Counted from the first letter of the stretch, positions 3,303-53,130 are shown. The stretch is DNA of 64,000 nt from Rhodosorus marinus CCMP1338 (GCA_029953675.1 JAMWBK010000003.1:1984001-2048000); one strand, 5' to 3'. Translations and numbers: made by a program. The notes: a model not told the origin generated them from the letters alone.

Positions 3303-3373
3303 AAACCTACGGAACTATGGGTATGCTGCACTGGGATGTATAATAGTGTTTCTCGAGCTCCGCTAGCATGGTA

Positions 3374-21976: not shown

Positions 21977-21977
21977 G

Positions 21978-24268: not shown

Positions 24269-24273
24269 GGTCC

Positions 24274-29116: not shown

Positions 29117-31310
29117 GATCCGTTTATTCAGAGGCTAACTACCCTGAGAAGCGAGAGACAAGACGCTGGCGGTGCGCGTCCACAAACAAAGCAGAATTGG
29201 AGCGCCACAGGGTCAAAGAAAGCTCCGTGAGCACACTATCTAAACGCCCTGGGTCGTAGCGAAACAGAGCTCACAGCCAGCGAGAACCTACACTATCTAT
29301 CAAGCCAAAGCACTCAATAATGAGGGGGACGAACCGGTATGTCACCGCCGAATCGCGAAAGGTAGGGTTCGACATCGCTGCCGCGTACTGCGAATCTTTC
29401 ACTTGCCGCATGGACCGAGCTGCAGCTCCTCGACGCCGAGCCGACGCAGGCAGGTACCTGGTCGGTCGCCTGAGGACAAGGGATGGAGGGAGAGGTCAAT
29501 GTACTCACTGCGACGCGCATTGAGGTCAGTCACAACGAGATCCGCCACCCGCTCTACCGCTGGGGCGTCACTCTCATCAGTAATTTCCGATGCCGCAGCC
29601 AGAGGGACCTCATACTCCACTTCTCGGTCCGTACCGAGCGATTGAGAACGAAGGCAGCGGAACAGCAAGCGGTTGAGCCGCGTATGGCGTCTGCCAACAG
29701 ATGCGCACCATGATCACCCCACGGCACATTGGCCTCGCACAATGCGCAGCTAGAATCCCGCTCAACAGTCCAAGGGGGTTGCGGGAAGCCCAGGTAAAGT
29801 CGTGAGCTTACACGAAGTTCGAGATCGGTAAGCGCCAACCGCCGATACGCAGGTATGACCTTGAAGAAACGGGAGCTGAGACTCCCCGCGCAGGCGAGCC
29901 AGAGTCGACGCCGAGCACGAAGGTAAACTCAGAAGGGTGGCATACGAGTCCCGATGTATGTCCCACGAAAGGGTTTTTTCGATTACATCGGTCCTCGAAG
30001 GGGCGGGACCCGACCGGGAAACGCCCCCCCCCTCCGGCGGCCTCGACGGCACAGCCACGGCGTCAATATCCTCGGCAGTTTCTACACCATTTCCAACACA
30101 CGGTGCTGCAGCAGAGACTCCCGAATGCTGGCCACCGAGGTAGTCAAGAACTGCCGCCCAGGAATCGCACCGAGCCTGGGTACCACTCGGCAGGGTGGTA
30201 CATTGTTGAAAAGCGGCCACCAGTTCCGGAAAAAAAACCCCCGAGCCGTGGGGCCAGAGTCCCGTCCAGTCGCCCAACCCGAAGTCCACTCAACAAACCA
30301 CTAACATGCGGATCACACTCCGCAGACCATGTATTAAGCGCATTGGCCCACGAACTCACCACAGCCGCCGGCTGGATCGCCGCGTAAGATCCCACAGCCA
30401 GCCCACCCAACCGCACGGGCAACGCGATCTGCCGGTGAAGGACGTGCTTTTCTGCATCCCCCAAACAGATAGCTCAGCATCCATCAGCGTGCCTAGCACG
30501 TCCCTCGCTCGTCGGTCTGCGCGGAGCGCCAGCCAAGACCCCGCACTCGGAGGGTGGCTGCCGCTAAAAATAGGTCAGCCTCTAGCACGCGCTGAACCGG
30601 AAGATGAGCAGAGCGGTCTGGAGGTACCCTTCTGGGGGACTGCACAGCTCAGTCAGGAGTTCATCCTGATGACTCAGGAACGCGGTGAGGCTGCGTTCAA
30701 CAAATATCGGGGTGCCTACGGGGACACCGAACAGAAGGAACCCCTCAGCTCGCCAAATATCTCGGAACCTGGATGGAACCGCGTCCGCGGTGCAGTGAGA
30801 CCCCCCCTAGAAATCTCACTTGGCATGGTTGATACGCAGCCCCACCAAGGAAGCCACCTAGCCGAAACAATCGTAGGCCGGCACCAGATCGTCGGGAGTG
30901 CCAAGAAGCGTCACATCGTCATAGAAGGCGACCGCACGGACCCGCGGGAACTGATGTTTCAGCTGCAACAGCATCAGTGCAATCCATAGGAGTGCAGGAA
31001 CGGCCCTAAGGGATCACCCTGCTGCACACCCGTATGAGCCGCAAAGGTGTGGCTCTCGGCACCCAAGGTGACAAATCGGGGCCCGTTCGGCGCTTCACCA
31101 TATACGCGGCGTAAGAACGGGAAGCCAGAGGGGAAAAGCTGACGAACTACCTCAAGCGCGTGTGCTCGAGACACACTGTTAAACGCGTTGGCGAGATCCA
31201 CAGAAAGCGTGCCCAAGGGCTCATCGCGGAGACCGTCCAGCTGCAGGATACGCAGCACCAGTTTTCACAGCCACCTGAATAGCCGACGCCGTCTCGCCCC
31301 TACCGACACC
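29117..31310 (-). mobile_element. RLE non-LTR element, family B, 5'-truncated within RT, decayed
   Basis: Reverse-complement 3' end gatccgtttattcagaggctaactaccctgag at 29117. Minus ORFs carry ANAFNSVSR, GVQQGDPLGPFL, LPVRLGGLA and RLE motifs. Confidence 0.9.
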
Positions 31311-32049
31311 GTCTCGAACTTCGTGTAAGCTTACGACTTTACCTGGGCTTGCCGCAACCCCCTTGGCCTGTTGAGCGGGATTCTAGATGCGCATTGTGCG
31401 GGGCCAATGTGCCGTGGGGTGATTATGGTGCGCATCTGCTGGCGTCTTGTGCGGAGGTTCAAGGGGCCCGGACCAGACGCCATACGCGGCTCAACCGCTT
31501 GCTTTTTCGCTACCCTCGTTCTCAATCGCTTGGTACGGACCGAGAAGTGGAGTATGAGGTCCCTCTGGCGGTGGCATCGGAAATTGCTGATGAGAGTGGC
31601 GCTCCAGCGGTACAGCAGGTGGCGGATCTCGTTGTTACTGAACTCAATGCGCGTCGCAGTGAGTACATTGACCTCTCCCTCCATCCCTTGTCCTCAGGCG
31701 AGCAGGTACCTGCCTGCGTCGGCTCGGCGTCGAGGAGCTGCAGCGCGGTCCATGCGGCAAGTGAAAGATTCGCAGTACGCGGCAGCGATGTCAAACCCTA
31801 CCTTTCGCGATTCGGCGGTGACATACCGGTTCGTCCCCCTCATTATTGAGTGCTTTGGCTTGATAGATAGTGTAGGTTCTCGCTGGCTGCGAGCTCTGTT
31901 TCGCAACGACCCAGGGCGTTTAGATAGTGTGCTCACGGAGCTTTCTTTGACCCTGTGGCGCTCCAATTCTGCTTTCTTTGTGTACGCGCGTCATCAGCGT
32001 CTTGTCACTGGCTTCTCAGGGTAGTTAGCTTCGGAATAAACGGATCATC
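31311..32049 (+). mobile_element. RLE non-LTR element, family B, 3' portion
   Basis: Knuckle and RLE region (CALCG..HLLASC, VADLV, VPLIIECFG) ending in aataaacggatcatc. Confidence 0.9.
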
Positions 32050-32199
32050 GACCGTTTAACAAGCGGGGGAAAGACCGCTGAAAGCAGCCTCCCACGAAAG
32101 AACACTTAGGCACCCAAAATTGCGCCAAACCCAACTCCAGACCACAATCACAATCCAAAACCCCGTCATGTAAATAGTTCAGATAGAGAGTGTCTCGAG

Positions 32200-33082
32200 A
32201 TGTAACCTGTGCGGTGGCTCACTGCCGTGCGGTGATTTTGGTGGGCACTTGTTGCCATCTTGTCCGCATGTTCAAGGGGCCCGGACTCGACGCCATACGC
32301 GGCTCAACCGCTTGCTCTTCCGCTATCTTCGTTCTCAGGTGCTGGACACGGGCCGGGATGTGAAGTATGAGGTCCCCGTGCTGGTGGCAATGGCAATTGA
32401 TCCGTTTATTCAACTACTGATGAGGCTGATGCCACCGTGGTGCGACGGGTAGCGGACCTAATGGTCACTGATCTGAGCGCTGGTCGGAGTGAGTACATCG
32501 ACCTTTCTAATCCTTGTCCTCAGGCTACCAGATACCTGCCAGCGTCTGCTCAACGCCGAGGTGCTGCAGCTCGGTCAATGCGGCAACTGAAGAAATCCCA
32601 GTACGCTGCGGCTATTTTATACTCTACGCTTCGCGATTCGGCATTGTCCTATCGGTTTGTTCCCCTCTTCATCAAGTGCTTTGGTTTAGTTGACAGTGTA
32701 GGTTCTCGTTGGCTTCGGGGCTCTTTTGGACCAACCCAGGGGGTATTGATAGCCTCATCACGGAGCTATCCTTGACCTTGTGGGGTAGAAATGCTGCTTT
32801 ATTTTTGGACGCACGTCATCGATCGATCCGTTTATTCAGAGGCTAACTACCCTGAGAAGGGAGAGACAAGACGCTATTGACGCGCGTCCACAAACAAAGC
32901 AGAATTGGAGCGCCACAGGGTCAAAGAAAGCTCCGTGAGCAGACTATCTGACCCAGGGCGTATATCTATACGCCCTGGGTCGTTGCGAAACAGAGCTCAC
33001 AGCCAGCGAGAACCTACACTATCTACGTCATCAGCGTTTGTTTCTCGCTTCTCAGGGTAGTTAGGCTCTGAATAAACGGATC
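32200..33082 (+). mobile_element. RLE element, diverged subfamily C, with two nested antisense family-B 3' fragments
   Basis: Host RLE region is interrupted at 32399-32415 and at 32821-33024 (8-bp TSD acgtcatc at 32813-32820 and 33025-33032), then resumes to gtagttaggctctgaataaacggatc. Confidence 0.85.
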
Positions 33083-33740
33083 AGATCATATAGTTGGATC
33101 AGGATCATACACCTGGATAAGGATCGTATAGTTAAGGATCTACACGAGAAATTGGTGAGAGTTCTTTAAAATAGATTGGGGTGGGTAGAACGCATGTCTC
33201 GATTTCTTCGTTTAGAATGGGGGTTGGAGAGATTTGGAATCCCTCCATGGAGCAAACCCATCTACCCGCCACTAAGCTACCTAGACAGCCATAGCGGACC
33301 AAGCATCGAACTCTGAGGATTCTCTCATTATCGACTCGGTTCTATTGGAGGGCTGGAATACACCTCGGAACTCTCGGTTTTGCACTTATTCTCCTTCCCT
33401 TGGAAGACGTTTCAGTTGGAAGCTAAAATTCGAGGGGTATGTACCACTATGTAGGCGGTTGGCTAACCCCCCATTTTGGTAAGTGTCTTATGACGAGACT
33501 TTTTAGCGAAAAAAATTAACTGCATCCATCCACTCAATCCTTTCGTCAAAAGCCCAAATTCAAATCAATCTCTGAATGATTTAAAACACAACAAAGTATT
33601 AATTATCATTTATTCAGATTACATAAATGAAAAACAATATCATGATTATGCTTCGCATTATGAATAAAACGTATCAAATAGCAAAGTTTATTTCTGCGAT
33701 TACTATATTCATATGCATTAAATAAATTTCAATATTTAGT

Positions 33741-34266: not shown

Positions 34267-34937
34267 AGGCGTCGTTGGATTGGATAGTGGCACTGATGGT
34301 TTTAATCAATTTTGGGGTTTGGTTCTAAAGTGTCCTCTGAACAGAGGTTCCCGGACAACAAATCGAATCGTTGTTTGACGATGAACTTTTCAATGTACGC
34401 ATCCAGCAGTTGGGACCCCTCGGGCAGGCGTGGGCGGAAGATAAAAACGAATCAGCAGTTCGGAGATGTGCAATAGAGATTCTCCGGCTTTAGTCACCAA
34501 GCGGGTAGGTACGCGACAAGAATATGTCTTCCTTTCCAAAAATGTCCGTAAAAAGGCCACGCCTGTTTCTTTCTAGGCATATTCAACGCCTGGGTAGAGT
34601 GGTGGGTCTCAGGAGATGCTCCAAAACTGAACAAATATGAAGCCGTTTATTCGGTGCCCCGCAGAGTGAGAGTTGGTTAAGAGCCACGTCCATGCTTACT
34701 AAAGGGTGGAACGGAAAAACGAGCGCCGGTTTGGATATGTGATCCAGCTTTTGACAACTTTTGTGCTGGTGGTGCGGCGGACAGGATTGCGAGTTTGGTG
34801 GTCTATTTAATCAGTCGTTGCGAGGTTGCAAGACGGGCTATGATGGAGTAGGGGTCTGTCCCTGCTAGACAACCGTTGGAAGGTTCGAGTTAGGATTTTT
34901 TTTGAAGGGGAGTGGGGCAGGAGGGCGCGAGTGCGAG

Positions 34938-36063: not shown

Positions 36064-36681
36064 GATGATCCGTTTATTCCGAGGCTAACTACCCTGAGAA
36101 GCCAGAGACAAGACGCTGATGACGCGCGTACACAAACAAAGCAATTGGAGCGCCACAGGGTCAAAGAAAGCTCCGTGAGCAGACTATCTAAACGCCCTGG
36201 GTCGTTGCGAAACAGAGCTCGCAGCCAGCGAGAACCTACGATGCACTATCTATCAAGCCAAAGCACTCAATAATGAGGGGGACGAACCGGTATGTCACGT
36301 CACCGCCGCATCGCGAAAGGTAGGGTTTGACATCGCTGCCGCGTACTGCGAATCTTTAACTTGCCGCATGGACCGAGCTGCAGCTCCTCGACGCCGAGCC
36401 GACGCAGGCAGGTACCTGGTCGCCTGAGGACAAGGGATGGAGAGGTCAATGTACTCACTGCGACGCGCATTGAGGTCAGTCACAACGAGATCCGCCACCC
36501 GCTGTACCGCTGGGGGGTCACTCTCATCAGCAATTTCCGACGCCACCGCCAGAGGGACCTCACGCTCCACTTCTCGGTCCCTACCGAGGGATTGAGAACG
36601 AAGGTAGCGGAAAAGCAAGCGGTTGAGCCGCGTATGGCGTCTGGTCCGGGCCCCTTGAACCTCCGCACAAGACGCCAACAG
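36064..36681 (-). mobile_element. RLE family B, 5'-truncated copy
   Basis: Reverse-complement tail gatgatccgtttatt at 36064; RLE domain on the minus strand, truncated by a GTGAC duplication. Confidence 0.9.
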
Positions 36682-39600
36682 GCCTAGTCCCAAGTGCTCC
36701 GTCGTGGGTCCGTCGAGGCCCGCCCGGAGGCCCTGGTACGTACATTCCCTACTGAGCCTGCCGTTGGCTCTGTTCAACGAACCATATCCCCTCTCCGCTG
36801 GGTCTTGATGACCAACGTGCGGCCCCAGCGCTCCTCGCGCTCTGGGGCCCGCATTCCTGTTCGCGATTTTCGTGACACGATGGCCTCGTGTCTCGGCGCG
36901 TCGCCCCGCGATTTTCTCTACGTTGATTTTTCGTGACCCCCATGCTTGCTTCTTGGTGACAGATACTGCGCATCAAATCCTATCTACTTTGTTGAAAACG
37001 CCTCCTGCGCAGAGACCTGTTTTAGCGAATAAGGTTTTGACACGCGCCCGTGTTTCTTTAATGCTTGATTTTGATCGTTGCTCTGCGGAATCCCTCGCCC
37101 CTTCGGATCTCCTTGGCGCTCGCGCAGAGGACATTCTGACCTTGGCGGTTTCGGCTCATTTTGAAGGGCTGGCTTTCAAGGGTTCAGAAAAACCTGCTAG
37201 ATCGGCTCCCAAATAGGGGTTTCCTCCATGCTGCGGTCCAAGATTTCCTCGCCTCGGAAACTTCGCTTTTGGAGAATCATCCTGACTTTGCTCGGGTGTT
37301 TCCCGCTGGGCGTCTTTCTGTCGGTGCGGAGCATTGTGACGACGTTGGGGAACTACCCTCTATGGATGTAAATGTCGATCCAGAGGTGGACCCGCTCGCC
37401 ATTGAGCCGAGCACCCCTTCGCCCTTTGGCGTCCGGGGGAGGGTCTCCGGCTCCTTAGGGGCTATCTATGCATCCCTCTCCTCTTTGCGTGCCCCTCCGT
37501 TCAAGCGCCCCTTCTTGGCGCCAGCTGGGGGGGAAAGTCTTATGATTCGCATCCCGTAGACGCTTCCTCCGTGGTGAGGGAGCAGGATGTCTGAGTCTTT
37601 TAGGGAACATTGCGAGCTTCCTGCTTTCTTTCCGAGCCCAGGTAGCTTTGAGGACTGGCGCTCTCGCCTTTTCTCTTGGTTCGAAGGTTTTGTTGGGCGT
37701 TTTCCTTCTGGGGATATCCCTCTTTGCCCTCGTTCGCCCCCAGTCTCTCTCCCTCATCGTTTGCGCAGGAGGGTTTCTTTTCTTTTGGATTTCCTGCTTA
37801 TGGAGGTGGCCGACCATCCTCAAGCAGCACTTGCTTGGCAGCTTTTGTTTGTTTTCCCTCGGCTAGTGCTCACGGTCTCCCAGGGACGCGATGCATGTCG
37901 AATTAGACGCAAAGTTCAGTCTTTTCTGGCGGGGGACTTTGCTTTCTTAGAATCTTTATACCTCGCTAGTGTCTCTTCTTCCTCTTCGTGCGGGACTTCA
38001 CCTTCTTCTCGTTCCCGTAGGCAGGTACGGGCAAAGGCAGCAGTGGCACAGAGGATATTCGGCGTGGGGCGGCCATCCCTCAGCAAGGCGCTTCAGTCGA
38101 GCCGTATTGGACTGACCTGGCTGATCCAGTCGCCGCGTTGTTCCCTGCGCGCGACGTGAGTTGGAACTCTGAGTTCCAGCGTGTCTTAGATCCTTTTGTC
38201 GATTCCTCACGCGGTAGGGTTCGGTTGCTCGTTCGGCCGGATGAGGTTCTGGCTCTGCTTAGGTCCGCCCCGAAATGTCGTGCACCTGGTCCCTCAGGAC
38301 TCCGGGTCGAACTTTTTCACTGGTTGGGTGAAGAAGGGCTGGACGCCCTTGCGCGGGTACTGGAGGGTCTTCTCAATGGGGACAATTTTTGCGCAGAGGC
38401 CTGGGCACTATTGTCGCGCTCCCAACTGGTCCTCTTGCCCAAGCCTGGACATTCCGAACAGACACCTTCCCTTTGGCCAATCGGGATGTGCGAAGCATTG
38501 CGGAATCTGGCGAGCCGTTTTCTATCGCGCCAGCTCACTAGGGAGGCCAGGGGTTTTTTTAGGTTGACCCAGGTCGGTGTCGGCTATTCAGGTGGCTGTG
38601 AACTGGTGACGCGTATCCTGAAGCTGGACGGTCTCCGCGATGAGCCCTTGGGCACGCTTTCTGGGGATTTCGCAAACGCGTTTAACAGTGTGTCTCGAGC
38701 ACACGCGCTTGAGGTAGTTCGTCAGCTTTTCCCCTCTGGCTTTCCGTTCTTACGCCGCGTATATGGTGAAGCGCCGAACGGGCCCCGATTTGTCACCTTG
38801 GGTGCCGAGAGCCACACCTTTGCGGCTCATACGGGTGTGCAGCAGGGTGATCCCTTAGGGCCGTTCCTGCACGCCTGTAGATTGCAACTGGAGCTTTTGC
38901 GGCTGAAACATCAGTTCCCGCGGGTCCGTGCGGTCGCCTTCCATGACGATGTGACGCTTCTTGGCGCTCCCGACGATCTAGTGCCGGCCTACGATTTTCT
39001 CGGCGAGGTGGCTTCCTTGGTGGGGCTGCGTATCAACCACGCCAAGTGCGACTTCTGGGGGGGGTCTCACTGCACCGCAGACGCGGTTCCATCCAGGTTC
39101 CGAGATATTTGGCGAGCTGAGGGCTTCATTCTGTTCGGTGTCCCTGTAGGCACTCCGATATTTGTTGAACGCAGCCCATCCGCGCTCCTGAGTCATCATG
39201 ATGAGCTCCTCACTGAGCTGTACAGTCTCCCGGAAGGGTACCTCCAGACCGCTCTGCTCATCTTCCGGTTCAGCGCGGGCCAGAGGCTGACCTATTTTTT
39301 GCGGCAGCTACCCTCCGAGTGGGGGTCTTGGCTGGCGCTCCGCGCAGACCGACGAGCGAGGGACGTGCTAGGCACGCTGGTGGGTGCTGAGCTATCTGTT
39401 TTGGGGGATGCAGAAAAGGACGTTCTTCACCGGCAGATAGCGTTGCCCGTGCCGCTGGGCAAGCTGGCTGTGGGATCTTACGGGGGATCCAGCCGGCGGC
39501 TGTGGTGAGTTCGTGGGCCAATGCGCTTAATACATGGTCTACGGAGTGTGATCCGCATGTGAGTGGTTTGTTGAGTGGACTTCGGGTTGGGCGGCTGGAC

Positions 39601-40779: not shown

Positions 40780-43700
40780 AAATAGGTGCGCACCATAAAT
40801 CACCCCACGGGACACTGGCCCCGCACAATGCGCATCTAGAATCCCGCTCAACAGGCCAAGGGGGTTGCGGCAAGCCCAGGTAAAGTCGTAAGCTTCCACG
40901 AAGTTCGCTTTCTTTTCTTTTGGTTTCCTGCTTATGGAGGTGGCCGAACATCCTTAAGCAGTACTTGCTTGGAAGCTTTTGTTTGTTTTTGCTCGGCTAG
41001 TGCTCACGGTCTCCCGGGGGCGCGATCATGTCGAATTAGACTCAAAGTTCAGTCTTTTCTGGCGGGGGACTTTGCTTTCTTAGAATCTTTATACCTCGCT
41101 AGTGTCTCGTCTTCCTCTTCGTGCGGGACTTCACCTTCTTCTCGTTCCCGTAGCAGGTACGGGCAAAGGCAGCAGTGGCACAGGGGGATATTCGGCGTGG
41201 GGCGGCCATCCTCCAGCAAGGCGCTTCAGTCGAGCCGTATTGGACTGACCTGGCTGATCCAGTCGCCGCGTTGTTCCCTGCGCGCGACGTGAGTTGGAAC
41301 TCTGGGTTCCAGCGTGTCTTGGATCCTTTTGTCGATTCCTCACGCGGTAGGAGTCGGTTGCTTGTCCGGCCGGATGAGGTTCTGGCTCTGCTCCGCTCCG
41401 CCCCGAAATGTCATGCACCTGGTCCCTCAAGACTCAGGACTCCGGGTCGAACTTTTTCACTGGTTGGGTGAAGAAGGGCTGGACGCCCTTGCGCGGGTAC
41501 TGGAGGGTCTTCTCAATGGGGACGATTTTTGCGCAGAGGCCTGGGCACAATATTGTCGCGCTCCCAACTGGTCCTCTGGCCCAAGCCTGGACATTCACAC
41601 CAGACACCTTCCCTTCGGCCAATCGGGATGTGCGAAGTTTTGCGGAAGCTGGCGAGCCGTTTTCTATCGCGCCAGCTCACTAGGGAGGCCAGGATTTTTT
41701 TCGGGTTGACCCAGGTCGGTGTCGGCTATTCAGGTGGCTGGGAGCTGGTGACGCGTATCCTGCAGCTGGATGGTCTCCGCGATGAGCCCTTGGGCACGCT
41801 TTCTGTGGATTTCGCCAACGCGTTGAACAGTGTGTCTCTAGCACACGCTCTTGAGGTAGTTCGTCAGCTTTTCCCCTCTGGCTTTCCGTTCTTACGCTGC
41901 GTATATGGTGAAGCGCCGAATGGGCCCCGGTTTGTCACCTTGGGTGCCTAGGGCTCTACCGCAAAGGTGTGGCTACACCTTTGCGGCTCATACGGGTGGG
42001 TGTGCAGCAAGGGTGATCCCTTAGGGCCGTTCCTGCACGCCTGTGGATTGCAACTGGTGCTGTTGCGGATGAAACATCAGTTCCCGCGGCGGGTCCGTGT
42101 AGTCGCCTTCCATGTCGATGTGACGCTTCTTGTCCCGTTAGGGAACATTGCGAGCTTCCTGCTTTCTTTCGGAGTCCAGGTAGCTTCCAGGACTGGCGTT
42201 CTCGCCTTTTCTCTTGGTTCGAAAGTTTTGTTGGGCGCTTTCCTTCTGGGGATATCCCTCTTTGCCCTCGTTCTCCCCTAGTCTCTCTCCCTCATCGTTT
42301 GCCCAGGAGGGTTTCTTTTCTTTTGGATTTCCTGCTTATGGAGGTGGCCGACCATCCTCAAGCAGCACTTGCTTGCAACCTTTTGTTTGTTTTTCCTCGG
42401 CTAGTGCTCACGGTCTCCCAGGGGCGCGATGCATGTCGAATTAGACGCAAAGTTCAGTCTTATCTGGCGGGGGACTTTGCTTTTCTTAGAATCTTTATAC
42501 CTCGCTAGTGTCTCTTCTTCATCTTTGGTCCGTCTATTCAGAGGCTAACTGCCCTGAGAAGCCAGAGACAAGACGCTGATGACGCGCGTACGCAAACAAA
42601 GCAGAATTCGAGCGCCACAGGGTCAAAGAAAGCTCCGTGAGCAGACTATCTAAACGCCCTGGGTCGTTGCGAAACAGAGCTCGCAGACAGCGAGAACCTA
42701 CACTATCTATCAAACCAAAGCACTCAATAATGAGGGGGACGAACCGGTATGTCACGTCACCGCCGCATCGCGAAAGGTAGGGTTTGACATCGCTGCCGCG
42801 TACTGCGAATCTTTAACTTGCCGCATGGACCGAGCTGCAGCTCCTCGACGCCGAGCCGACGCAGGCAGGTACCTGGTCGCCTGAGGACAAGGGATGGAGA
42901 GGTCAATGTACTCACTGCGACGCGCATTGAGGTCAGTCACAACGAGATCCGCCACCCGCTGTACCGCTGGAGCGTCACTCTCATCAGCAATTTCCGATGC
43001 CACCGCCAGAGGGACCTCATACTCCACTTCTCGCTCCGTACCGAGGGATTGAGAGCGAAGGTAGCGGAAGAGCAAGCGGTTGAGCCGCGTATGGCGTCTG
43101 GTGCGGGCCCCTTAAACCTCCGCACAAGGCGTCAACAGATGCGCACCATAATCACCCCACGGCACATTGGCCCCGCACAGTGCGCATCTAGAATCCCGCT
43201 CAACAGGCCAAGGGGGTTGCGACAAGCCCAGGTAAAGTCGTAAGCTTACACGAAGTTCGACATCGGTAAGCGCCCACCGCCGATACGCAGGTATGACCGT
43301 GAAGAAATGGGAGCTGAGACTCCCCCCAAACTGCGCAGGCGAGCCAAAGTCGACGCCGAGCGCGAAGGTAAACTCAGAAGGGTGGCATACGAGTCCTCCT
43401 CTTCGTGCGGGACTTCACCTTCTTCTCGTTCCCGTAGGCAGGTACGGGCAAAGGCAGCAGTGGCACAGAGGATATTCGGCATGGGGCGGCCATCCTCCAG
43501 CAAGGCGCTTCAGTCGAGCCGTATTGGACTGACGTGGCTGATCCAGTCACCGCGTTGTTCCCTGCGCGCGACGTGAGTTGGAACTCTGAGTTCCAGCGTG
43601 TCTTAGATCCTTTTGTCGATTCCTCACGCGGTAGGGGTCGGTTGCTCGTTTGGCCGGATGAGGTTCTGGCTCTGCTCCGCTCCGCCCCGAATGGTCATGC

Positions 43701-46700
43701 ACCTGGTCCCTCAGGACTCCGGGTCGAACTTTTTCACTGGTTGGGTGAAGAAGGGCTGGACGCCCTTGCGCGGGTACTGGAGGGTCTTCTCAATGGGGAC
43801 AATTTTTGCGCAGAGGCCTGGGCACTATTGTCGCGCTCCCAACTGGTCCTCTTGCCCAAGCCTGGACATTCCGAACAGACACCTTCCCTTTGGCCAATCG
43901 GGATGTGCGAAGCATTGCGGAATCTTGCGAGCCGTTTTCTATCGCGTCAGCTCACTAGGGAGGCCAGGGTTTTTTTCGGGTTGACCCAGGTCGGTGTCGG
44001 CTATTCAGGTGACTGTGAACTGGTGACGCGTATTCTGCAGTTGGACGGTCTCCGCGATGAGCCCTTGGGCACGCTTTCTGTGGATTTCGCCAACGCGTTT
44101 AACAGTCTGTCTCGAGCACACGCGCTTGAGGTAGTTCGTCAGCTTTTCCCCTCTGGCTTTCCGTTCTTACGCCGCGTATATGGTGAAGCGCCGAACGGGC
44201 CCCGATTTGTCACCTTGGGTGCCGAGAGCCACACCTTTCCGGCTCATACGGGTGTGCAGCAGGGTGATCCCTTAGGGCCGTTCCTGCACGCCTGTGGATT
44301 GCAACTGGAGCTTTTGCGGCTGAAACATCAGTTGATGATGATGACGATGATCATTATCCGTCTATTCAGAGGCTAACTACCTAGAGAAGCCAGAGACAAG
44401 ACGCTGATGACGGACGTAAACAAACGGAGCAGAATTGGAGCGCCACAGGGTCAAAGAAAGCTCCGTGAGCAGACTATCTAAACGCCCTGGGTCGTTGCGA
44501 AACAAAGCTCGCAGACAGCGAGAACCTACACTATCTATCAAACCAAAGCACTCAATAATGAGGGGGACGAACCGGTATGTCACCGCCGAATCGCGAAAGG
44601 TAGGGTTTGAGATCGCTGCCGCGTACTGCGAATTTTTCACTTGCCGCATGCACCGAGCTGCAGCTCCTCGACGCCGAGCCGACGCAGGCAGGTACCTGGT
44701 CGCCTGAGGACAAGGGATGGAGGGAGAGGTCAATGTACTCACTGCGACGCGCATTGAGCTCAGTAACAACGAGATCCGCCACCCGCTGTACCGCTGTAGC
44801 GTCACTCTCATCAGCAATTTCCGATGCCACCGCCAGAGGGACCTCATACTCCACTTCTCGGTCAGTACCGAGCGATTGAGAACGAAGCTAGCGGAAGAGC
44901 AAGCGGTTGAGCCGCGTATGGCGTCTGGTCCGCCCCCTTGAACCTCCGCACAAGACGCCAAGAGATGCGAACGATAATCACCCCACGGCACATTGGTCCC
45001 GCACAATGCGCATCTAGAATCCCGCTCAACAGGCCAAGGGGGTTGCGACAAGCCCAGGTAAAGTCGTAACCTTACACGAAGTTCGAGATCGGTAAGCGCC
45101 AACCGCCGATACGCAGGTATGACCGTGAAGAAATGGGAGCTGAGACTCCCCCCCAAACCGCGCAGGCGAGCCAAAGTCGACGCCGAGCGCGAAGGTAAAC
45201 TCAGAAGGGTGGCATACGAGTCCCGATGTATGTCCCACGAAAGGGTTTTTTGGATTACATCGGTCCTCGAAGGGGCGGGACCCGACCGGGGAACGCCCTC
45301 CTCTGGCGGTCTCGACGGCACAGCCACGGCGTCAATATCCTCGGCAGTTTCTACACCATTTCCAACACACGGTGCTGTAGCAGAGACTCCCGAACGCTGG
45401 CCACCGAGGGAGTCAAGAACTGCGGCCCAGGAAGGGTTTTTTGGATTACATCGGTCCTCGAAGGGGCGGGACCCGACCGGGAAACGCCCCCCTCTGGCGG
45501 TCTCGAGGGCACAGCCACGGCGTCAATATCCTCGGCAGTTTCTACACCATTTCCAACACACGGTGCTGTAGCAGAGACTCCCGAACGCTGGCCACCGAGG
45601 GAGTCAAGAACTGCCACCCAGGAATCGCACCGAGCCTGGGTACCAATCGGCAGAGTGGTACATTGTTGAAAAGCGGCCTCCAGTTCCGAAAAAAAACCCC
45701 CGAGCCGTGGGGCGAGAGTCCCGTCCAGCCGCCCAACCCGAAGACCACTCAACCACTCACATGCAGATCACACTCCGTAGACCATGTACTAAGCGCATTG
45801 GCCCACGAACTCACCACAGCCGCCGGCTGGATCGCCGCGTAAGATCCCACAGCCAGCCCGCCCAGCCGCACGGCAACGCGATCTGCGGGTGAAGAACGTC
45901 CTTTTCTGCATCCCCCAAAACAGATAGCTCAGCATCCATCAGCGTGCCTAGCACGTCCCTCGCTCGTCGACCTGCGCGGAGCGCCAGCCAAGACCCCCAC
46001 TCGGAGGGTAGCTGCCGCAAAAAATAGGTCAACCTCTAGCATCAGTTCCCGCGGGTCCGTGCGGTCGCCTTCCACGACGATGTGACGCTTCTTGGCACTC
46101 CCGACTATCTGGTGCCGGCCTACGATTTTCTTGGCGAGGTGGCTTCCTTGGTGGGGCTGCGTATCAACCATGCCAAGTCAGATATCTTGGGCGGGTCTCA
46201 AAAAAATGCACCGCGGACGCGGTTCCATCCAGGTTCCGAGGTATTTGGCGAGCTGAGGGCTTCCTTCTGTTCGGTGTCCCCGTAGGCACTCCGATATTTG
46301 TTGAACGCAGCCTCTCCGCGTTCCTGAGTCATCACGATGAACCCTTGACTGAGCTGTGCAGTCTCCCAGAAGGGTACCTCCAGACCGCTCTGCTCATCTT
46401 CTGGTTCAGCGCGGGCCAGAGGCTGACCTATTTCTTGCGCAGCTACCCTCCGAGAGTGCGGCGGGTCTTGGCCCTGCGCTCCGCGCTGACCGACGAGCGA
46501 GGGACGTGCTAGGCACGCTGATGGATGCTGAGCTATCTGTTTTGGGGGATGCAGAAAAGGACGTTCTTCACCCGCAGATCGCGTTGCCCGTGCGGTTGGG
46601 CGGGCTGGCTGTGGGATCTTACGGGGCGATCCAGCCGGTGGCTGTGGTGAGTTCGTGGGCCAATGCGCTGAATACATGGTCTAGGGAGTGTGATCCGCAT

Positions 46701-47917
46701 GTGAGTGGTTTGTTGAGTGGACTTCGGGTTTGGCGGCTGGACGGGACTCTCGCCCCACAGCTCGAAGGGGTTTTCTCGGAACTGGAGGCCGCTTTCCAAC
46801 AATGTACCACCCTGCCGAGTGGTACCCAGGCTCGGTGCGATTCCTGGGCGGCAGTTCTTGACTCCCTCGGTGGCCAGCGTTCGGGAGTCTCTGCTGCAGC
46901 ACCGTGCGTTGGATATGGTGTAGAAACTGCCGAGTATATTGACGCCGTGGCTGTGCCGTCGACACCGCCAGAGGAGGGCGTTTCCTGGTCGGGTCCCGCC
47001 CCTTCGAGGACCGATGTAATCCAAAAAACCCTTTCGTGGGACACACATCGGGACTCGTATGCCACCCTACTGAGTTTACCTTCGTGCTCGGCGTCGACTT
47101 TGGCTCGCCTGCGCGGTTTGGGGGGAGTCTCAGCTCCCATTTCTTCACGGTCATACCTGCGTATCGGCGGTTGGCGCTTACCGATCTCGAACTTCGTGTA
47201 AGGTTACGACTTTACCTGGGCTTGTCGCAACCCCCTTGGCCTGTTGAGCGGGATTCTAGATGCGCATTGTGCGGGACCAATGTGCCGTGGGGTGATTATC
47301 GTTCGCATCTCTTGGCGTCTTGTGCGGAGGTTCAAGGGGGCGGACCAGACGCCATACGCGGCTCAACCGCTTGCTCTTCCGCTAGCTTCGTTCTCAATCG
47401 CTCGGTACTGACCGAGAAGTGGAGTATGAGGTCCCTCTGGCGGTGGCATCGGAAATTGCTGATGAGAGTGACGCTACAGCGGTACAGCGGGTGGCGGATC
47501 TCGTTGTTACTGAGCTCAATGCGCGTCGCAGTGAGTACATTGACCTCTCCCTCCATCCCTTGTCCTCAGGCGACCAGGTACCTGCCTGCGTCGGCTCGGC
47601 GTCGAGGAGCTGCAGCTCGGTGCATGCGGCAAGTGAAAAATTCGCAGTACGCGGCAGCGATCTCAAACCCTACCTTTCGCGATTCGGCGGTGACATACCG
47701 GTTCGTCCCCCTCATTATTGAGTGCTTTGGTTTGATAGATAGTGTAGGTTCTCGCTGTCTGCGAGCTTTGTTTCGCAACGACCCAGGGCGTTTAGATAGT
47801 CTGCTCACGGAGCTTTCTTTGACCCTGTGGCGCTCCAATTCTGCTTTGTTTGTGGACGTCATCAGCGTCTTGCCTCTCGCTTCTCAGGGTAGTTAGCCTC
47901 TGAATAAACGGATCATC
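40780..47917. mobile_element. Nest of family-B RLE copies: plus-strand host(s) with antisense inserts at 42521-43396 and 44334-46039
   Basis: Host RT is interrupted at catcagtt (44326-44333) and resumes at catcagtt (46040-46047), an 8-bp TSD. Host N-terminal region is interrupted at 42520 and resumes at about 43397. Ends in ggatcatc at 47917. Confidence 0.88.
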
Positions 47918-50900
47918 AAGAGCAGAGGGATGCATAGATAGCCCCTAAGGAGCCGGAGACCCTCCCCCGGACGCCAAAGGGTGAAGGGGTGCTCGGCTCA
48001 ATGGCGAGCGGGTCCACCTCTGGATCGACATTTACATCCATAGAGGGTAGTTCCCCCACGTCGTCACAAGGAGTGCGGAGGCACCGACAGAAAGACGCCC
48101 AGCGGGAAACACCTGAGCAAAATCGGGATGATTCTCCAAAAGCGAAGTTTCCTAGGCAAGGAAATCTTGGCGCAGCATGGAGGAAACCCATATTTGGGAG
48201 CAAATCTAGCAGGTTTTCTGAACCCTTGAAAGCCGAGGCCTCCGTGAGGGGCATTTGGACGTGACTCTTAGCTCGAGGCTCGGAGACGTTTTTGACGAGC
48301 TGGAGGGTGCGTTTCAGCAATGTATTGCCCTGCCAAGCGGTACACAACCCCGCTACGGGTCGTGGCGCGCAGTTCTTGACTCTTTTGGCGGATCTCGTTC
48401 GGGAAGCTCTGCGGCCGAACCGTGTCTTGACAGTGGAGCCCGGATGGGGGCGTTTGGGCTGGAGACGATGCTGACATGGATGACGCTGTTGCCGTGCCGT
48501 CCAGGCCGCCTGAGGAACCTGTTACCCGGTGTGGCCCGGCCCCTTCGGGAACTGATGTAGTACAAAAAACCCTTTCCTGGGACATACATCGCGACTTGTA
48601 CGCCACCCTTCTAGGTTCAGCTTCCTCTCCGCCTTCGACCTTGGCTCGCCTTCGTGATTTGGGGGATAGCCTCAGCTCTCACTTCTTTACGGTCATTCCT
48701 GCCTACCCGCGGCTAGTGATGACAGACTTCGAGATGCACACGAGCTTACGTTTGTACCTTGGCTTGCCCTGTAAACTTTACTCGGCAACTACCTAATGCA
48801 GCGTAACATGCGCTGCATTAGGTTCTATCAAGATCTAGGGAAAATGTGTGTGTTTAACCCCGTCTCCCGGGGTCTCTAGCTACGATAAAAAAGAAAAATA
48901 AGGGATCAGTGGCTGGTCCGCCTGATCCACGCGCAAAGCCCCTAACGCGAGCTCTGCGTTCCCTGCCCAAAGTGTTCTGTTTAGTTGAGCCCGCACGTTC
49001 TACCTGTGCGGTAGCCACGTGCCGTGCGGTGAATTCGGTGGACACCTGTTGGTATCCTGTCCGCAAGTCCAGGGGGCCCGAACTCGTCGCCATACGCGGC
49101 TCAAACGGTTGCTGTTTCGCTATCTTCGTTCTCAGATGCTGGGCACGGACCGGGAGGTCATCAGCGAAGACGCTCAACCGCGTACTCAGACAAGAGGCTG
49201 AGTACGTGGTTGACCTTTCTATTCCTTGTCCTCAGGCGACCAGATACCTAACCGCATCTGCACGCTGCCGTGGCTGCCGTGGCGCTGCGGCTCGGTCAAT
49301 GCGGCAACTGAAGGAGTCCCAGTACGCTGCAGCTATGTTGGACTCTACGCTCCGCGATTCGGCCTTGTCCTATCCGTCTGTTCCACTCATCATCGAGTGC
49401 TTTGGTTTAGTTGATTGTGTCGGCTCTCGCTGGCTTCGTGGGCTCTTTCGTCACAGACCTAATCGTCTTGATAGCCTCCTCACGGAGCTGTCCTTGACCT
49501 TATGGCGTTCCAACGTGGCTTTATTGTTTGACGAGCGTCATCAGCGTCTTGCTTCTCGCTTCTCAGGGTAGTTAGGCTCTCATAAACTGATGATGATGTG
49601 TTACATCTCGAATCCCTGTCCGTAGGCCATGGCGGTTGTGGGAACCCAAGGTACAAGCGCAGCTCGTACGCAGCTCGAAGTCTGTCATCACCAACCCCGG
49701 GTAGGCAGGAATGACCGACCGAAAAGAAGCGAAAGCTCAGATTACCACCGAAACCACGGAGGCGAGCCAAGGTCGAAGGCAGAGAGGAAGGCGAACTCAG
49801 AAGGGTGGCGTACGAGTCCCGATGTATGTCCCAAGACAGGGCTTTTTGTACTACATCATTCCTCGAACGGGCCGGACCCGACCGGGTAACAGACTCCTCA
49901 GGCGGCCTCGATGGCACGGCGACAACGTCCATTTCAGCATCATCTTCAGCGCAAACGACTTCACCAGCCGCTGGTTTCAGGTGTTCACCACTTCCGAGAC
50001 ACGGCTCGGCTGCAGAGCTCCCCGCACGAGCCCTGCCAAAAGAGTCAAGAACTGCCCAGCCGGGACCCGTAACAGGGCTGTGTACCGCTCGGCAGGGCAA
50101 TACACTCCAATTCTGCTTTGTTTGTGGACGCGCGTCATCAGCGTCTTGTCTCTCGCTTCTCAGGGTAGTTAGCCTCTGAATAAACGGATCAGCAATACAC
50201 TGCTGAAACACAGCCTCCAATTCTGCAAAAACGCCGCCGAGCTTCGAGGCGAGAGTAACGTCCAATCTCCCCACGCGAAGGCGTCGACTTTGGCTCGCCT
50301 GCGCGGTTTGGGGGGGAGTCTCAGCTCCCATTTCTTCACGGTCATACCTGCGTATCCGCGGTTGGCGCTTACCGATCTCGAACTTCGTGTAAGCTTACGA
50401 CTTTACCTGGGCTTGCCGCAACCCCCTTGGCCTGTTGAGCGGGATTCTAGATGCGCATTGTGCGGGGCCAATGTGCCGTGGGGTGATTATGGTGCGCATC
50501 TGTTGGCGGCTTGTGCGGAGGTTCAAGGGGCCCGGACCAGACGCCATACGCGGCTCAATCGCTTGCTCTTCCGCTACCTTCGGTCTCAATCCCTCGGTGC
50601 GGAGCGAGAAGTGGAGTATGAGGTCCCTCTGGCGGTGGCATCGGAAATTGCTGATGAGAGTGACGCTACAGCGGTACAGCGGGTGGCGGATCTCGTTGCG
50701 ACTGACCTCAATGCGCGTCGCAGTGAGTACATTGACCTCTCCATCCCTTGTCCTCAGGCGACCAGGTACCTGCCTGCGTCGGCTCGGCGTCGAGGAGCTG
50801 CAGCTCGGTCCATGCGGCAAGTTAAAGATTCGCAGTACGCGGCAGCGATGTCAAACCCTACCTTTCGCGATGCGGGGGTGACGTGACATACAGGTTCGTC

Positions 50901-53130
50901 CCCCTCATTATTGAGTGCTTTGGCTTGATAGATAGTGTATCGTAGGTTCTCGCTGGCTGCGAGCTCTGTTTCGCAACGACCCAGGGCGTTTAGATAGTCT
51001 GCTCACGGAGCTTTCTTTGATACTGTGGCGCTCCAATTCCGCTTTGTTTGTGGACGCGCGTCATCAGCGTCTTGTCTCTCGCTTCTCAGGGTAGTTAGCC
51101 TCTGAATAAACGGATCATCATCATCATCATCATCATCATCAAGGCCCCGTAACAAACCAAGCACGTATGGATTATTCTCTCTAGACCATGTAGTCAGTGC
51201 ATTGGCCCAAGAGCTCACCACGGCCGCCGGTTGGATCGCCGCATAAGTCCCACGGCCAGTCCGCCCCATCGCACGGGCAAGGCCAGCTGACGGTGAAGGA
51301 CTGCCTGTTCTTCAAATAGTTCAGGCGCTGGCACGCGCTGAATCTGAAAATGATCAAAGCTGTCTGGAGGTACCCCTCGGGGAGGCGGCACAGCTCATTC
51401 AGCAGCTCATCATGGCGACTCAGGAGCGCGCGAATGGCCCGCTCCACAAACCCCCCCAAAACTCGCAGTGCCAACAGAGACACCAAATAGAATGAAACCT
51501 TCGGGACGCCAAATGTCCCGAAACAGAGAGGGAGCCTGGGCCGCAGCGCACAGCAGGCCTCCCCAAAATCACACTTGGCGTGGTTTGTCCGTAACCACCT
51601 AGAAGAGAACGCATCTCGCCGAGAAGAGAATACGCCGGCACAAGATCATCAGGAGTGCCGAGGAGCGTCACAGCGTCATGAAAAGCGACGACTCCGACCC
51701 GCGAGAACTGCTTCTGCACCCGCAACAACGCCAACTGCAAGCCACATGCGTGCAGGAAAGGCCCTAAGGGGTCTCCCTGCTGAACACCCGTATGGGCTAC
51801 AACACTTTGGCTGTCCGCACCCAAGGTGACAAGGCGAGGGGAATTGAGCCCCTCATCATAGACGCGGCGCAAGAAACAGAAGCCAGTTGGAAAGAGCTGA
51901 CGAACCACCTCGAGTGCGTGAGTACGCGACACGCTGTTGAAAGCGTACCAAAAGGCTCCTCACTGAGACCATCCGGCTGAAGGATGCGAGTCACCAGTTA
52001 CAGCCCCACCAGTTACAGCCTGAATAACCTACACCGACCTTGGTCAACCTAAAAAAGCCCCTGGCTTCCTTAGTTAGACAACGCGAGACGAAACGGCTCG
52101 TCAGCTTCCGGAGCGCTTCGCACATTCCAATAGGGCGCAACGAAGGCGCCTGGCATGAACGGCCGGGCTTGGGCAAGAGAACGAGCTGGGAGCGGAACAA
52201 TAAAGCCCACGCAGCTGCACACAAATCGTCTCCATTCACGAGACCCTCCAGCACCCGAGAGAGGGCATCCAGGCCCTCCTCGCCAAGCCAATGGAAAAGC
52301 TCAATCCCAAGGCCTGAGGGACCCGGTGCACGATCCTTCGGAGCAGACCCAATAAGAGCTAGAACCTCATCAGGTCGGACAAGCAACCGATCCGTGCCAT
52401 GTAGAGAGTCTACAAAAGGATCTAAGATATGCTGAAGCTCAAGAGTTCCAACTCAGGTCGTGCGCAGAGAACAGTGCGGCGACTGGATCAGCCAGGTCAG
52501 TCCGATAAGGCTCGACTGAAGGGCCCTGCTGAAGGATGGCCGCCACACGCCGGATATCCCCCTGTGCCCTGCTGCCTTTGCCCGTACCTGCCTACGGGAA
52601 CGAGAAGAAGGTGAAGTCTAGCACGAAGAGGAAGCAGAGACACTAGCAAGGTACAAAGATTCTAGGAAAGCAAAGTCCCCTGAGAGAAAAGACTGAACTT
52701 TGCCTAATCGGACATGCATGGCGCCCCTGTGAGACCGTGAGCACTGGCCGAGGAAAAACAAACATAAGCTTCCAATCAAGTTCTGCTTGAGGATGGTCGG
52801 CCACTTCCATAACAGGAAATCCAAAAGAAAAGAAACCCTCCTGCGCAAGCGATGAGGAAGAGAGACTAGCACTCCCTGTCCCATCCATGAGCGTCTGGCT
52901 CTGTTAGTGTGCTCGACTTCCCGTTCCATAGCAGGAGCGAGCACTACGCTCGAGTATTGAACACAGCCCTGGGACACTCGCCCACCCCCTGTCACTCCCC
53001 AATACCTACGCCGGTCCGCCTGGATGGGCATCTCCTTCACAGCCATGCAGACCTGGCTCAGTCTCGGACGATCCAACTCCTGTGTCGCTCGGGTAGCTTG
53101 GGTTCCCCATACAGGGGTGAATACAACCAA
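47918..53130. mobile_element. Nest of subfamily-C/B RLE copies: mainly a minus-strand host with plus-strand inserts at 50107-50191 and ~50283-51140
   Basis: Minus ORFs with APGPSGL, GVQQGDPLGP and FHDA. Inserts are flanked by gcaatacact (50097-50106 and 50192-50201) and aaggc (50278-50282 and 51141-51145); (ATC)9 tail at 51114-51140. Confidence 0.85.

Follow-up and report, generated by a model that had tools for sequence, protein, structure and literature searches.

Why should copies of a retrotransposon that have landed within their own relatives always be inverted with respect to the copy that hosts them? The question is raised by an island of repeats within a stretch of 64,000 nucleotides of Rhodosorus marinus CCMP1338 (JAMWBK010000003.1:1984001-2048000), referred to here as the window. 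An initial annotation had proposed that these elements nest in their kin strictly in antisense orientation, and that homology or element RNA guides them to do so. We therefore examined the identity of the element, the orientation of its nested copies, and the sites at which they were inserted.

The element and its domains

The evidence supports the identification of the island copies as a restriction-like endonuclease (RLE)-type, R2-like non-LTR retrotransposon of R. marinus. The reverse transcriptase (RT) matched Pfam RVT_1 above the gathering score (E = 3e-7) and, among PDB sequences, L1 ORF2p and R2 proteins (E from 6e-11 to 7e-8); its nearest match in the protein database was only 34% identical. 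In the C-terminal domain, residues C92, H107, C112, H123, E144, D165, D180 and K210 were unchanged in seven aligned sequences. When an AF2 model of this domain (pLDDT 67.5, with 75-90 in the core) was compared with the PDB using Foldseek, the top seven matches were all R2 proteins (R2Tg, R2Pm and R2Bm; probability 1.00; E from 1e-7 to 7e-5). The predicted fold is thus R2-like, with a CCHC motif and a PD-(D/E)xK restriction-like endonuclease. The element may lack an N-terminal APE endonuclease, although all copies are degenerate: a Pfam search with a 190-aa N-terminal ORF upstream of the RT gave no match, no zinc-finger or Myb domain was found in it, and the 0.9 kb further upstream contained no ORF of at least 150 aa. 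The longest copy, G (4.1 kb, about 64 bp less than full length), carried both RT (RVT_1) and RLE ORFs. Transcripts of the family were also found (MMETSP transcript P0159 and transcript contig L003).

The copies displayed the hallmarks of target-primed reverse transcription (TPRT), namely, 5' truncation to varying extents (5' ends from 1 to 4082), an invariant 3' end, and TSDs of only 4 to 10 bp. The common 3' end, …GAATAAACGGATC(ATC)n, was present in 16 of 16 tails, and the tail itself is microsatellite-like, consisting of AATAAACGG followed by (ATC)n.

Orientation of the nested copies

Tails were searched for by all-against-all BLASTN together with a tail-motif scan of the window (Table 1). 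Sixteen family-B/C 3' tails were found. Six lay in non-kin DNA (21012, 21975, 22207, 32047, 33086 and 36064), and at the other ten the immediate downstream flank was an RLE copy, in every case on the opposite strand. The strict antisense nesting described initially was thus borne out, as was its estimate of about 1/1000 for random orientation (10/10 against 50:50, P ~0.001). Seven of the ten kin tails were clean nests, flanked by host sequence at either end, and six of these had TSDs of 4 to 10 bp, which extends an earlier count of six host resumptions and four clear TSDs; for these seven alone, P was ~0.008. The other three (A at 29117, O at 47917 and R at 49598) were abutments without resumption of the host. 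The absolute orientation of the ten inserts was mixed, with five plus and five minus. In TPRT terms, the primer strand was the host sense strand in all ten cases, as had been claimed. No intact sense nest was found in the window by BLASTN and the tail-motif scan.

Two of the tails deserve comment. The one placed earlier at 42521 is indeed antisense in a plus host, but its end lies at 42526 (copy K). The one reported at 32399 is a real 17-bp tail fragment, visible in a pairwise alignment with G and with an exact 13-mer match to the tail; it represents an abortive insertion in C.

Table 1. Copies and fragments of the RLE element in the island (positions in the window; G, G-coordinates)
Feature	Position	Strand	Description
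X	28958..29116	+	5'-terminal family-B fragment, flank/primer side of the A tail; start is the true family 5' end (81-82% identical to the 5' ends of G and of the L002 full-length copy)
A	29117..31291	-	Family B, G 1894-4098; tail at 29117 abuts X; tail/target junction can be placed anywhere within up to 5 nt (GGATC vs host GGTTC)
B	31298..32047	+	Family-B 3' copy, ~3342-4099; head-to-head with A; tail flank non-kin
C	32186..32820	+	5'-truncated family C, 74% identical to B; hosts the 17-bp micro-insert and D; continues as E
17-bp tail fragment (…GAATAAACGGAT)	32400..32416	-	Inside C; no TSD
D	32821..33025	-	Family-B tail copy of 205 bp, inserted in C/E(+); TSD ACGTCATC
E	33026..33086	+	Host C resumes, with tail
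F	36064..36681	-	3' part of family-B host; tail in unique DNA
G	36682..40780	+	Longest family-B copy; nested in F/H(-); TSD AACAG/AATAG
H	40781..40908	-	Host F resumes (G 3496-3371)
I	40909..42137	+	Family-B fragment, 1093-2291, tailless; runs straight into J (919) on the same strand; possibly a remnant of a sense-oriented event, or a copy that a later insertion deleted
J	42138..42525	+	5' part of copy Z (J+L+O, 919-4099)
K	42526..43393	-	Family B (3235-4099) nested in Z (J/L) at G 1305; TSD 10 bp, TCTTCCTCTT, with mismatches
L	43394..44333	+	Middle part of Z
M/N	44334..46039	-	Family B (2599-4099) nested in Z (L/O); TSD CATCAGTT; 193-bp internal tandem duplication
O	46040..47917	+	3' part of Z; tail abuts P at AAGAG site, G 804
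P	47918..48234	-	Family-B fragment (804-490); probably part of the old F/H host, ~2.5 kb missing
Q/R	48256..49598	+	Family-C copy; tail abuts S(-)
S	49599..50104	-	Family-C host, 3'-side piece
T	50105..50191	+	87-bp family-B tail copy nested in family-C(-) host; TSD GCAATACACT
Host piece between T and U	50192..50279	-	Family C; tblastn alignment 49630-50256 spans T
U	50280..51140	+	Family B (3271-4099), (ATC)9 tail; in family-C(-) host; TSD AAGGC
V	51141..52867	-	5' part of family-C host, covering RT and N-terminal region

M and O were 99-100% identical across ~850 bp and N and O 92-95% identical, a pattern that indicates gene conversion between M and O, as judged from their sequences. A 4.9-kb LTR element nearby retains both of its 230-bp LTRs.

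Two more antisense nests came from a second locus (L002), on another contig of this assembly: insert e in a family-B/C host, and insert c, a family-B copy within a family-D RLE host. For B/C hosts, the window and L002 together gave 11 of 11 antisense. Family D had no BLASTN similarity to family B, and their RTs were 48% identical at the amino acid level. A further family-B tail in L002, d, probably abuts family D in sense: 74 nt separate it from confirmed family-D(-) RT coding sequence of the same strand, and similarity to family D at the motif level extends to the junction, at an AAGG-type site. Family-D hosts account for one or two antisense cases and one probable sense case.

Nick sites and their strand asymmetry

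The sequence at the tail junctions revealed a preference for nicking just 5' of AA, loosely S/AA(G), where the slash marks the nick. AA followed the tail directly at six of the ten kin junctions against a background of 8.4% on that strand (P = 5e-5), and also at the F junction in unique DNA; the weak preference for nicking at TT that had been remarked upon was thus correct and stronger than stated. In six of the seven clean nests the nick was preceded by G or C, and in the seventh, copy D, by T.

These sites are unevenly distributed between the strands of the element, confirming a strand-biased nick motif, which had been listed as an alternative to homing. The sense strand contains 15.5% A and 26.9% T, and AA occurs 113 times on it and 343 times on the antisense strand (3:1 antisense). 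The asymmetry was found for SAAG (19 sense vs 58 antisense), SAARR (16 vs 87), SAAGR (antisense by ~4-5:1), AAGAG (0 vs 7), and purine runs of at least 9 nt (6 vs 14). In family D, the skew was weaker (A 18.3%, T 23.0%, AA 85/140).

One hotspot was used twice. The nick for K fell in the longest antisense purine run, at an AAGAG site (G-coordinate 1305), and that for O in the second longest, also at an AAGAG site (804). Insert e of L002 was nicked at the same host nucleotide as K. Since e differs from K in length (418 vs 868 bp), has its own TSD with a host-specific variant (TCCACTT), and does not have K as its closest relative, it is a hit independent of K. Two independent insertions at one nick nucleotide point to sequence recognition. 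Altogether, AAGAG-type sites were used in 3 of 11 events.

We then considered how far the motif explains the orientation. Position-weight models predicted an antisense share of just 0.53-0.60; across models it was 0.53-0.80, or roughly 60-80% with the motif. Given the 2- to 4-mers at the nicks, an all-antisense outcome still had a probability of only 0.002-0.007 for the ten kin inserts and of 0.02-0.07 for the seven clean nests; for eleven inserts, it was ~0.005. Overall, taking the motif into account raised the probability of an all-antisense result in this small sample from ~0.001 to ~0.005-0.05. The four kin events away from AA sites (A, D, R and T) were all antisense as well, and three of them lay at k-mers equally common or commoner on the sense strand. 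Motif density in the RLE copies was not above that in the neighboring LTR element, in which no RLE insertion was found despite the equal density. The motif accounts for much of the antisense bias, though not provably for all of it.

Possible origins of the antisense bias

On balance, we think it somewhat likely that the region is a graveyard of 5'-truncated R2-like copies inserted through ordinary TPRT, and that antisense nesting is mostly a side effect of a cutting-site preference rather than of RNA-guided self-homing. The endonuclease or the priming step would favor nicks with AA immediately on their 3' side, ideally S/AAG leading into a purine run, as in CACG/AAGAGGAAGA, and the motif-bearing strand would become the sense strand of the new copy. 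Because the element's sense strand is A-poor and T-rich, such sites lie mainly on the antisense strand, so that a copy landing in a relative would usually be inverted. The remaining strictness could come from a small sample selected after the fact, from resolved sense events that leave no tail-to-kin junction (the same-strand I/J and N/M junctions may be their relics), and from same-family sense nests possibly lost via direct-repeat recombination, in an island whose copies visibly recombine with each other. We infer that the motif, sampling and loss together would suffice for 11 of 11. Against this stand the low probabilities that persist once the nick k-mers are given, for ten as for eleven inserts, the modest antisense share expected from position-weight models, the four antisense events away from AA sites, and the LTR element, equally rich in the motif yet free of RLE insertions. 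In addition, direct-repeat loss cannot cover T, U, D and the 17-bp insert, since repeats of 17-200 bp with ~75% identity should not recombine.

The excess left after motif correction (P ~0.005) would fit a strand rule that arises at integration because the host copy is transcribed, not because it is homologous, an explanation that we consider unlikely. Either the non-template (sense) strand, exposed, for example, in a co-transcriptional R-loop, would prime, or transcription-coupled repair would abort sense-oriented intermediates. The events at non-AA sites, the antisense inserts in dissimilar hosts (T, U, D and the micro-insert in C; c in family D), and the transcripts of the family all favor it. 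There is also a precedent in L1, whose antisense bias in transcribed genes has been modeled by transcription-coupled NER disfavoring sense insertions (PMC5717806). As with L1 in genes, the excess here would be antisense relative to a transcription unit and arise at integration; unlike in genes, the "unit" is a dead TE copy, degenerate and mostly 5'-truncated and promoter-less, and a composition-based explanation is at hand. Tail d, probably in sense, is also at odds with it, and reuse of a single-nucleotide hotspot suggests choice by sequence. It is quite improbable that filtering after insertion is the main cause, with both orientations inserted and same-family sense nests then lost by unequal exchange or single-strand annealing, or by repair during integration, leaving duplications or deletions within the copy. 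The M/O gene conversion shows that recombination is active, and two tailless same-strand junctions fit collapsed sense nests, one between I (ending at 2291) and J (starting at 919) and the other, with the 193-bp duplication, between N (ending at 3212) and M (starting at 3022). Sense self-insertions are also acknowledged to be hard to score in human TEs (PMC2836564). However, filtering is inapplicable to inserts of 17-205 bp or to family B in ~75%-identical hosts, that is, to four of the seven clean nests, all antisense, and the neighboring LTR element has not lost either LTR.

Self-homing, in which element RNA would pair with a homologous copy and the displaced sense strand would be nicked and prime TPRT, creating sources of dsRNA, was not supported and appears very improbable. 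It would account for the antisense orientation in 10 of 10 cases in the window and in 11 of 11 in B/C hosts, and for the fact that kin hold 10 of the 16 tails while the equally motif-rich LTR element holds none. Yet T, U, D and the micro-insert, which make up four of the seven clean nests, sit in family-C hosts just 70-78% identical to the inserted family B, and the family-D host of c has no detectable nucleotide similarity. The probable sense case d, the nick nucleotide shared by K and e at a purine tract, and the lack of relation between the truncation point of an insert and its position in the host also argue against homing. Pure chance, a 50:50 orientation in which a striking run was picked afterwards from many windows and patterns, is hardly credible either. 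There were just 10 or 11 events, spread over five or six hosts, and they were singled out because the pattern was striking; on the other side stand the P value of ~0.001, the two further antisense nests from the independent locus L002, and a strand-asymmetric motif that is demonstrably present.

A cutting-site preference as the main cause also has a parallel in human L1 and Alu. Like the present element, these non-LTR elements enter older copies of their kind by TPRT, and Levy, Schwartz & Ast (2010, PMC2836564) ascribed their orientation bias and insertion hotspots to sequence features intrinsic to the host element. There, however, the bias is toward sense, by ~2.2-2.6:1 for L1/Alu nested within L1/Alu, whereas here it is antisense and the sense strand is A-poor; moreover, the endonuclease is RLE here and APE there, and 11 events compare with tens of thousands. 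The piRNA-cluster "trap" locus flamenco (PMC10643416) shares with the island its richness in TEs and antisense fragments, and antisense or double-stranded RNA is possible in principle. In flamenco, every fragment runs antisense to a single cluster transcript and is maintained so by selection, whereas the bias here, with five plus and five minus inserts, exists only relative to the immediate host.

RLE-bearing clades include R2, R4/Dong, NeSL, CRE, HERO and Utopia (PMC4640811). The present element resembles them in its single ORF, with the RT followed by CCHC and PD-(D/E)xK endonuclease (predicted fold), in its TPRT signatures, and in its microsatellite-like 3' tail. Most of these clades use one site in a multicopy gene or a microsatellite. 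Here, in contrast, insertion was dispersed, and no single specific target sequence was found: the eleven nests lay at ten host positions and six window tails in unrelated DNA, with only a loose S/AAG or purine-run preference and hotspots. It is conceivable, though rather unlikely, that a protein-encoded preference for a CACG/AAGAGGAAGA-like purine tract, which lies antisense in the element's ORF, combines with an extra strand rule at integration to make this, in effect, a self-targeting RLE element. If so, its own dead copies would serve as a safe haven, and constant inversion would build inverted-repeat loci, potential sources of dsRNA. Target specificity of this kind would be new in a clade known for targeting rDNA, snRNA genes and microsatellites.

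Setting and identity of the retroelements

The first ~20 kb of the window, which is eukaryotic, consists of genes. A GC-rich (~57%) island of related retroelement copies follows, at 28.9-33.1 kb and 36.1-52.9 kb. The Ty3-like element adjacent to it has LTRs of ~230 bp that are ~87% identical, the left one being tandemly duplicated (24037-24268, 24269-24499). An ORF with RTX repeats, a domain that is unusual at a nuclear locus of a red alga, lies within a 3-kb gap between RLE copies and has no called gene on record; two ORFs of the window have no record as genes. Outside the island, a 1.1-kb direct repeat (75% identity; 13003-14062 and 17492-18570) with ORFs on both strands represents a gene family or some other repeat.

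We mapped the copies under study, which belong to families B and C, as pieces A to V and X. The longest, G, contains a frameshifted series of ORFs encoding a LINE-type reverse transcriptase (RT) (Pfam RVT_1, E=3e-7; PDB matches, L1 ORF2p and R2), and C, H, C, H, E, D, D and K columns are invariant between its C-terminal domain and distant homologues. For an intact version from family A, a further RLE family (22473-23345), the best seven PDB matches of the AlphaFold model were all R2 proteins (9dou, 9nl2, 9nl3, 8iby, 8gh6, 8ibz and 8ibw; E 1e-7 to 7e-5). All copies share a 3' end, …GTAGTTAGCCTCTGAATAAACGGATC, followed by an (ATC)n run of variable length, while their 5' ends range from 1 to 4082 and their target-site duplications (TSDs) from 4 to 10 bp. 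As far as sequence and modelled structure go, the label RLE retrotransposon for the B and C copies is justified by the RT matches, the C-terminal columns, the R2 matches of the model, the fixed tail, the varying 5' ends and the TSDs. No RT protein of this element family was found in the protein database (best RT relative, 34% identical), and the tail pattern found no match among metagenome contigs. One specific target site is the rule in most RLE clades (PMC4640811), whereas the R. marinus family has no single target site. It appears to be an undescribed RLE LINE of a red alga that inserts at dispersed targets, ends in an (ATC)n tail and comprises four or more subfamilies.

One 5'-truncated family-A copy (22485-23404), with an intact 290-aa RLE ORF and a tail ending …CCATTCATTC, has a perfect 176-bp direct repeat on both sides (22309-22484, 23405-23580). 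This is apparently an unusually long, 100% identical TSD of a very recent insertion. Family A was also found, 98% identical, at 11775-12688 of a second locus, L002.

Orientation of nested copies

Copies were mapped by BLASTN of each against G, tails were located by a 13-mer tail scan with manual inspection, and the 200 nt downstream of each tail were aligned in both orientations against a library of families A, B and C. Among the 16 B/C tails in the window, the flank was an RLE copy (kin) in 10 and non-kin DNA in 6. According to this alignment, all ten kin-flanked tails were antisense to their flank. The antisense nesting described in the initial annotation is therefore real, and its coordinates, TSDs and count were correct but for small shifts (the K tail, for example, ends at 42526). 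The ten tails comprised seven clean nests, in which the host resumes beyond the insert, and three abutments without resumption, each of which implies a kilobase-scale loss of host sequence.

Features of the window and of locus L002 (L002 coordinates are marked)
Feature	Location	Strand	Host or content	TSD
P450 gene	1737-3302		76% identical to Rhodosorus marinus protein	
MITE-like element	21976-22130		155 bp, palindromic; outer arms 27 nt, 93%; inner arms 19 nt, 95%; between short family-B tail fragments 21815-21975 and ~22131-22209	
Ty3-like LTR retrotransposon	24037-28942	-	4.9 kb; gag, PR, RT, IN ORFs	
RTX-repeat ORF	34902-35924		340 aa; calcium-binding nonapeptide repeats (Pfam HemolysinCabind, E=2e-9); signal-peptide-like start	
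Nest G	36682-40780	+	F/H	AACAG, one later mismatch
Nest K			J/L	10 bp, TCTTCCTCTT
Nest M/N	M, 44353-45433		L/O	CATCAGTT
Nest D			C/E	ACGTCATC
Nest T			family C	GCAATACACT
Nest U			family C	AAGGC
Nest, 17-bp tail fragment	32400-32416		copy C	none
Abutment, A	29117-31291		on X	
Abutment, O	I…O block, 40909-47917		on P	
Abutment, R	Q/R, 48256-49598		on S	
Insert c	L002 18544-19008	+	antisense in family D (-), a fourth RLE family	
Insert d	L002 19550-19765	-	tail 74 nt from confirmed D (-) coding sequence	
Insert e	L002 21130-21547	-	near-full-length B (+) copy	ACTT, extendable to TCCACTT (up to 7 bp)

Copy A, the I…O block and Q/R are each flanked by kin on both sides, and a gap of 1-3 kb in host coordinates separates the two flanks. 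Kilobases of host sequence must thus have disappeared there at or after integration, in contrast to the six clean TSDs of 4-10 bp. At the 87-bp insert T, the 12-mer forming its 5' end (50105-50116), CTCCAATTCTGC, recurs on the same strand of the host at 50214-50225, 13 nt past the right TSD copy and 23 nt past the tail of T. Chance self-complementarity within the ORF might account for this, as might the use of microhomology in forming the 5' junction.

Several other origins were rejected. Snap-back or twin-priming was ruled out for A|B, whose likeness (90-95%) is no greater than that of other pairs, and for M/N|O, where O has 2228-2599, M/N lack it, and identity is patchy. The H|I junction could not have arisen through recombinational inversion between inverted copies. 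The tail of B is not a sense case, since the same-strand copy C lies beyond 138 bp of non-kin DNA. Head-to-head (-)(+) pairs with tails outward occur at A|B (31291/31298) and H|I (40908/40909), with the 5' ends of B and H lying close to each other, at ~3342 and 3371. L002 contains a further head-to-head pair, in which a full-length (+) copy is met precisely at its 5' end by a 216-bp (-) tail copy (19759-19765), and a tiny palindromic pair, CATCCGTTT|CTGAATAAACGGATC, lies at 17775-17798. Such pairs could reflect reverse transcription primed from both nicks ("twin TPRT"), although the window cases fit imperfectly.

Nick motif and strand composition

Against a 50:50 expectation, 10/10 gives P ~0.001 and 7/7 gives ~0.008, but the true null for orientation differs from 50:50. 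AA directly followed the tail at six of the ten kin junctions (background on that strand, 8.4%; P=5e-5), as it did at the F tail in unique DNA, and G or C preceded the nick in 6/7 clean nests. The preferred site is S|AAG followed by a purine run, as in CACG|AAGAGGAAGA. Because the sense strand of G has 15.5% A and 26.9% T, AA occurs 113 times on it versus 343 times on the antisense strand; the corresponding counts are 16 and 87 for SAARR and 0 and 7 for AAGAG. Both O and K were nicked at AAGAG sites, at positions 804 and 1305 in G coordinates, where the antisense strand has its second-longest and its longest purine run, respectively. A strand-biased nick motif, which the initial annotation had listed as an alternative, is thus shown by the AA and AAGAG counts and goes a good way towards explaining the effect.

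Given the 2-4-mer present at every nick, an all-antisense outcome had a probability of 0.002-0.007 for the ten and of 0.02-0.07 for the seven clean nests; 5-mer conditional probabilities were dropped since the counts were too sparse. Position-weight models of the target predicted 0.53-0.60 antisense, being too soft with 10-16 sites. By our own arithmetic, an AAG-type class at 75-100% with the other events at 50% gives P ~0.01-0.03. A roughly ten-fold part of the effect can be put down to the motif, though the data do not show that the motif explains the whole.

In humans, sense insertions of L1 and Alu into L1/Alu outnumber antisense ones ~2.2-2.6-fold; the authors found hotspots, ascribed the bias to intrinsic sequence features, and left out same-type sense self-insertions, which are hard to score (PMC2836564). 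The R. marinus family, with its A-poor sense strand and RLE enzyme, is the mirror image of this sense bias (PMC2836564).

An independent locus and competing explanations

L002, 22.6 kb on another contig of the same assembly, was reached via an annotated R. marinus protein (P0160) and holds a second RLE island; L003, a transcript contig, holds no nest. The nick nucleotide of insert e is exactly that of K. Because e differs from K in length (418 versus 868 bp) and TSD, carries a host-specific variant in both TSD copies, and is less related to K (92%) than to G (94%), it struck this hotspot independently. With 11 events on 8.2 k strand-positions, we calculate a probability of ~0.007 that any two would coincide exactly. 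The host reading frame is continuous across insert c (…LQLVLQ|RLAAEVPEL…). Family D shares 48% amino acid identity with B in the RT (E=6e-40) and no BLASTN similarity. Insert d is probably a sense abutment at a T|AAGGCAAAG site, since a motif-level match (AKILKTLFRG versus ARVLEGLLNG) reaches its junction. The skew of family D is much weaker (A, 18.3%; T, 23.0%; AA, 85 versus 140). Orientation seems to track motif location rather than a strict strand rule, on tiny numbers. Three stretches of L002 (16747-19475 on the minus strand, 6159-7980 and 13533-17201) contain two or more additional RLE families, D being one of them; the locus also has numerous fragments, inverted and direct, as well as a tandem array (8249-8849). 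To judge from these sequences, the RLE diversity of the genome is much larger than the window shows.

The initial annotation had proposed that homology or RNA/R-loops guide the elements into kin. This mechanism was not supported and is highly improbable: four of the seven clean hosts belong to family C, only 70-78% identical to the inserted family B; the host of insert c has no detectable nucleotide similarity to B; one phosphodiester bond at a purine tract was used twice (K, e); and the truncation point of an insert is unrelated to its host position. Tails lay in kin in 10/16 cases, and none lay in the adjacent LTR element despite its RLE-like motif density. A higher motif density in kin was ruled out as the cause, since densities in kin DNA resemble those of other DNA or fall below them. 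The excess would ordinarily be put down to purging of genic insertions, and there may be a mild kin or regional insertion preference.

Recombination bears on whether survivorship is the main cause, with sense nests forming direct repeats that collapse and leave a copy carrying a duplication or deletion within it. Over the 3' ~850 bp, the insert M and its host O (46841-47916) are 99-100% identical, while other copy pairs show ~95% and N versus O 92-95%. This looks like a gene conversion tract between inverted neighbours 0.6 kb apart and indicates that copies in the island recombine. Two same-strand junctions have the collapsed form, I(…2291)|J(919…) at 42137/42138 and a 193-bp N|M duplication at 45433. 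However, the inserts that are short or cross-family, likewise all antisense, cannot be accounted for by survivorship, and we consider it decidedly unlikely as the main cause. The age order of host and insert was uninformative, all copies being 2-5% from the consensus. The non-AA events are antisense as well, which would agree with a transcription-linked variant of the R-loop idea acting through exposure of the non-template strand or through transcription-coupled repair, the latter reported for L1 within genes (PMC5717806); this variant is rather unlikely.

If the excess reflects only the motif and strand composition, the family would provide a mirror image of the L1/Alu sense bias in self-nesting and a caution against inferring mechanism from small runs. 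If nesting were nearly 100% antisense across the genome, in excess of the motif prediction, it would reveal a strand-choice step in RLE-type TPRT, involving transcription, R-loops or a self-encoded target site. Such a step would bear on the self-limitation of these elements, the seeding of inverted-repeat loci and the engineering of R2-like integrases.
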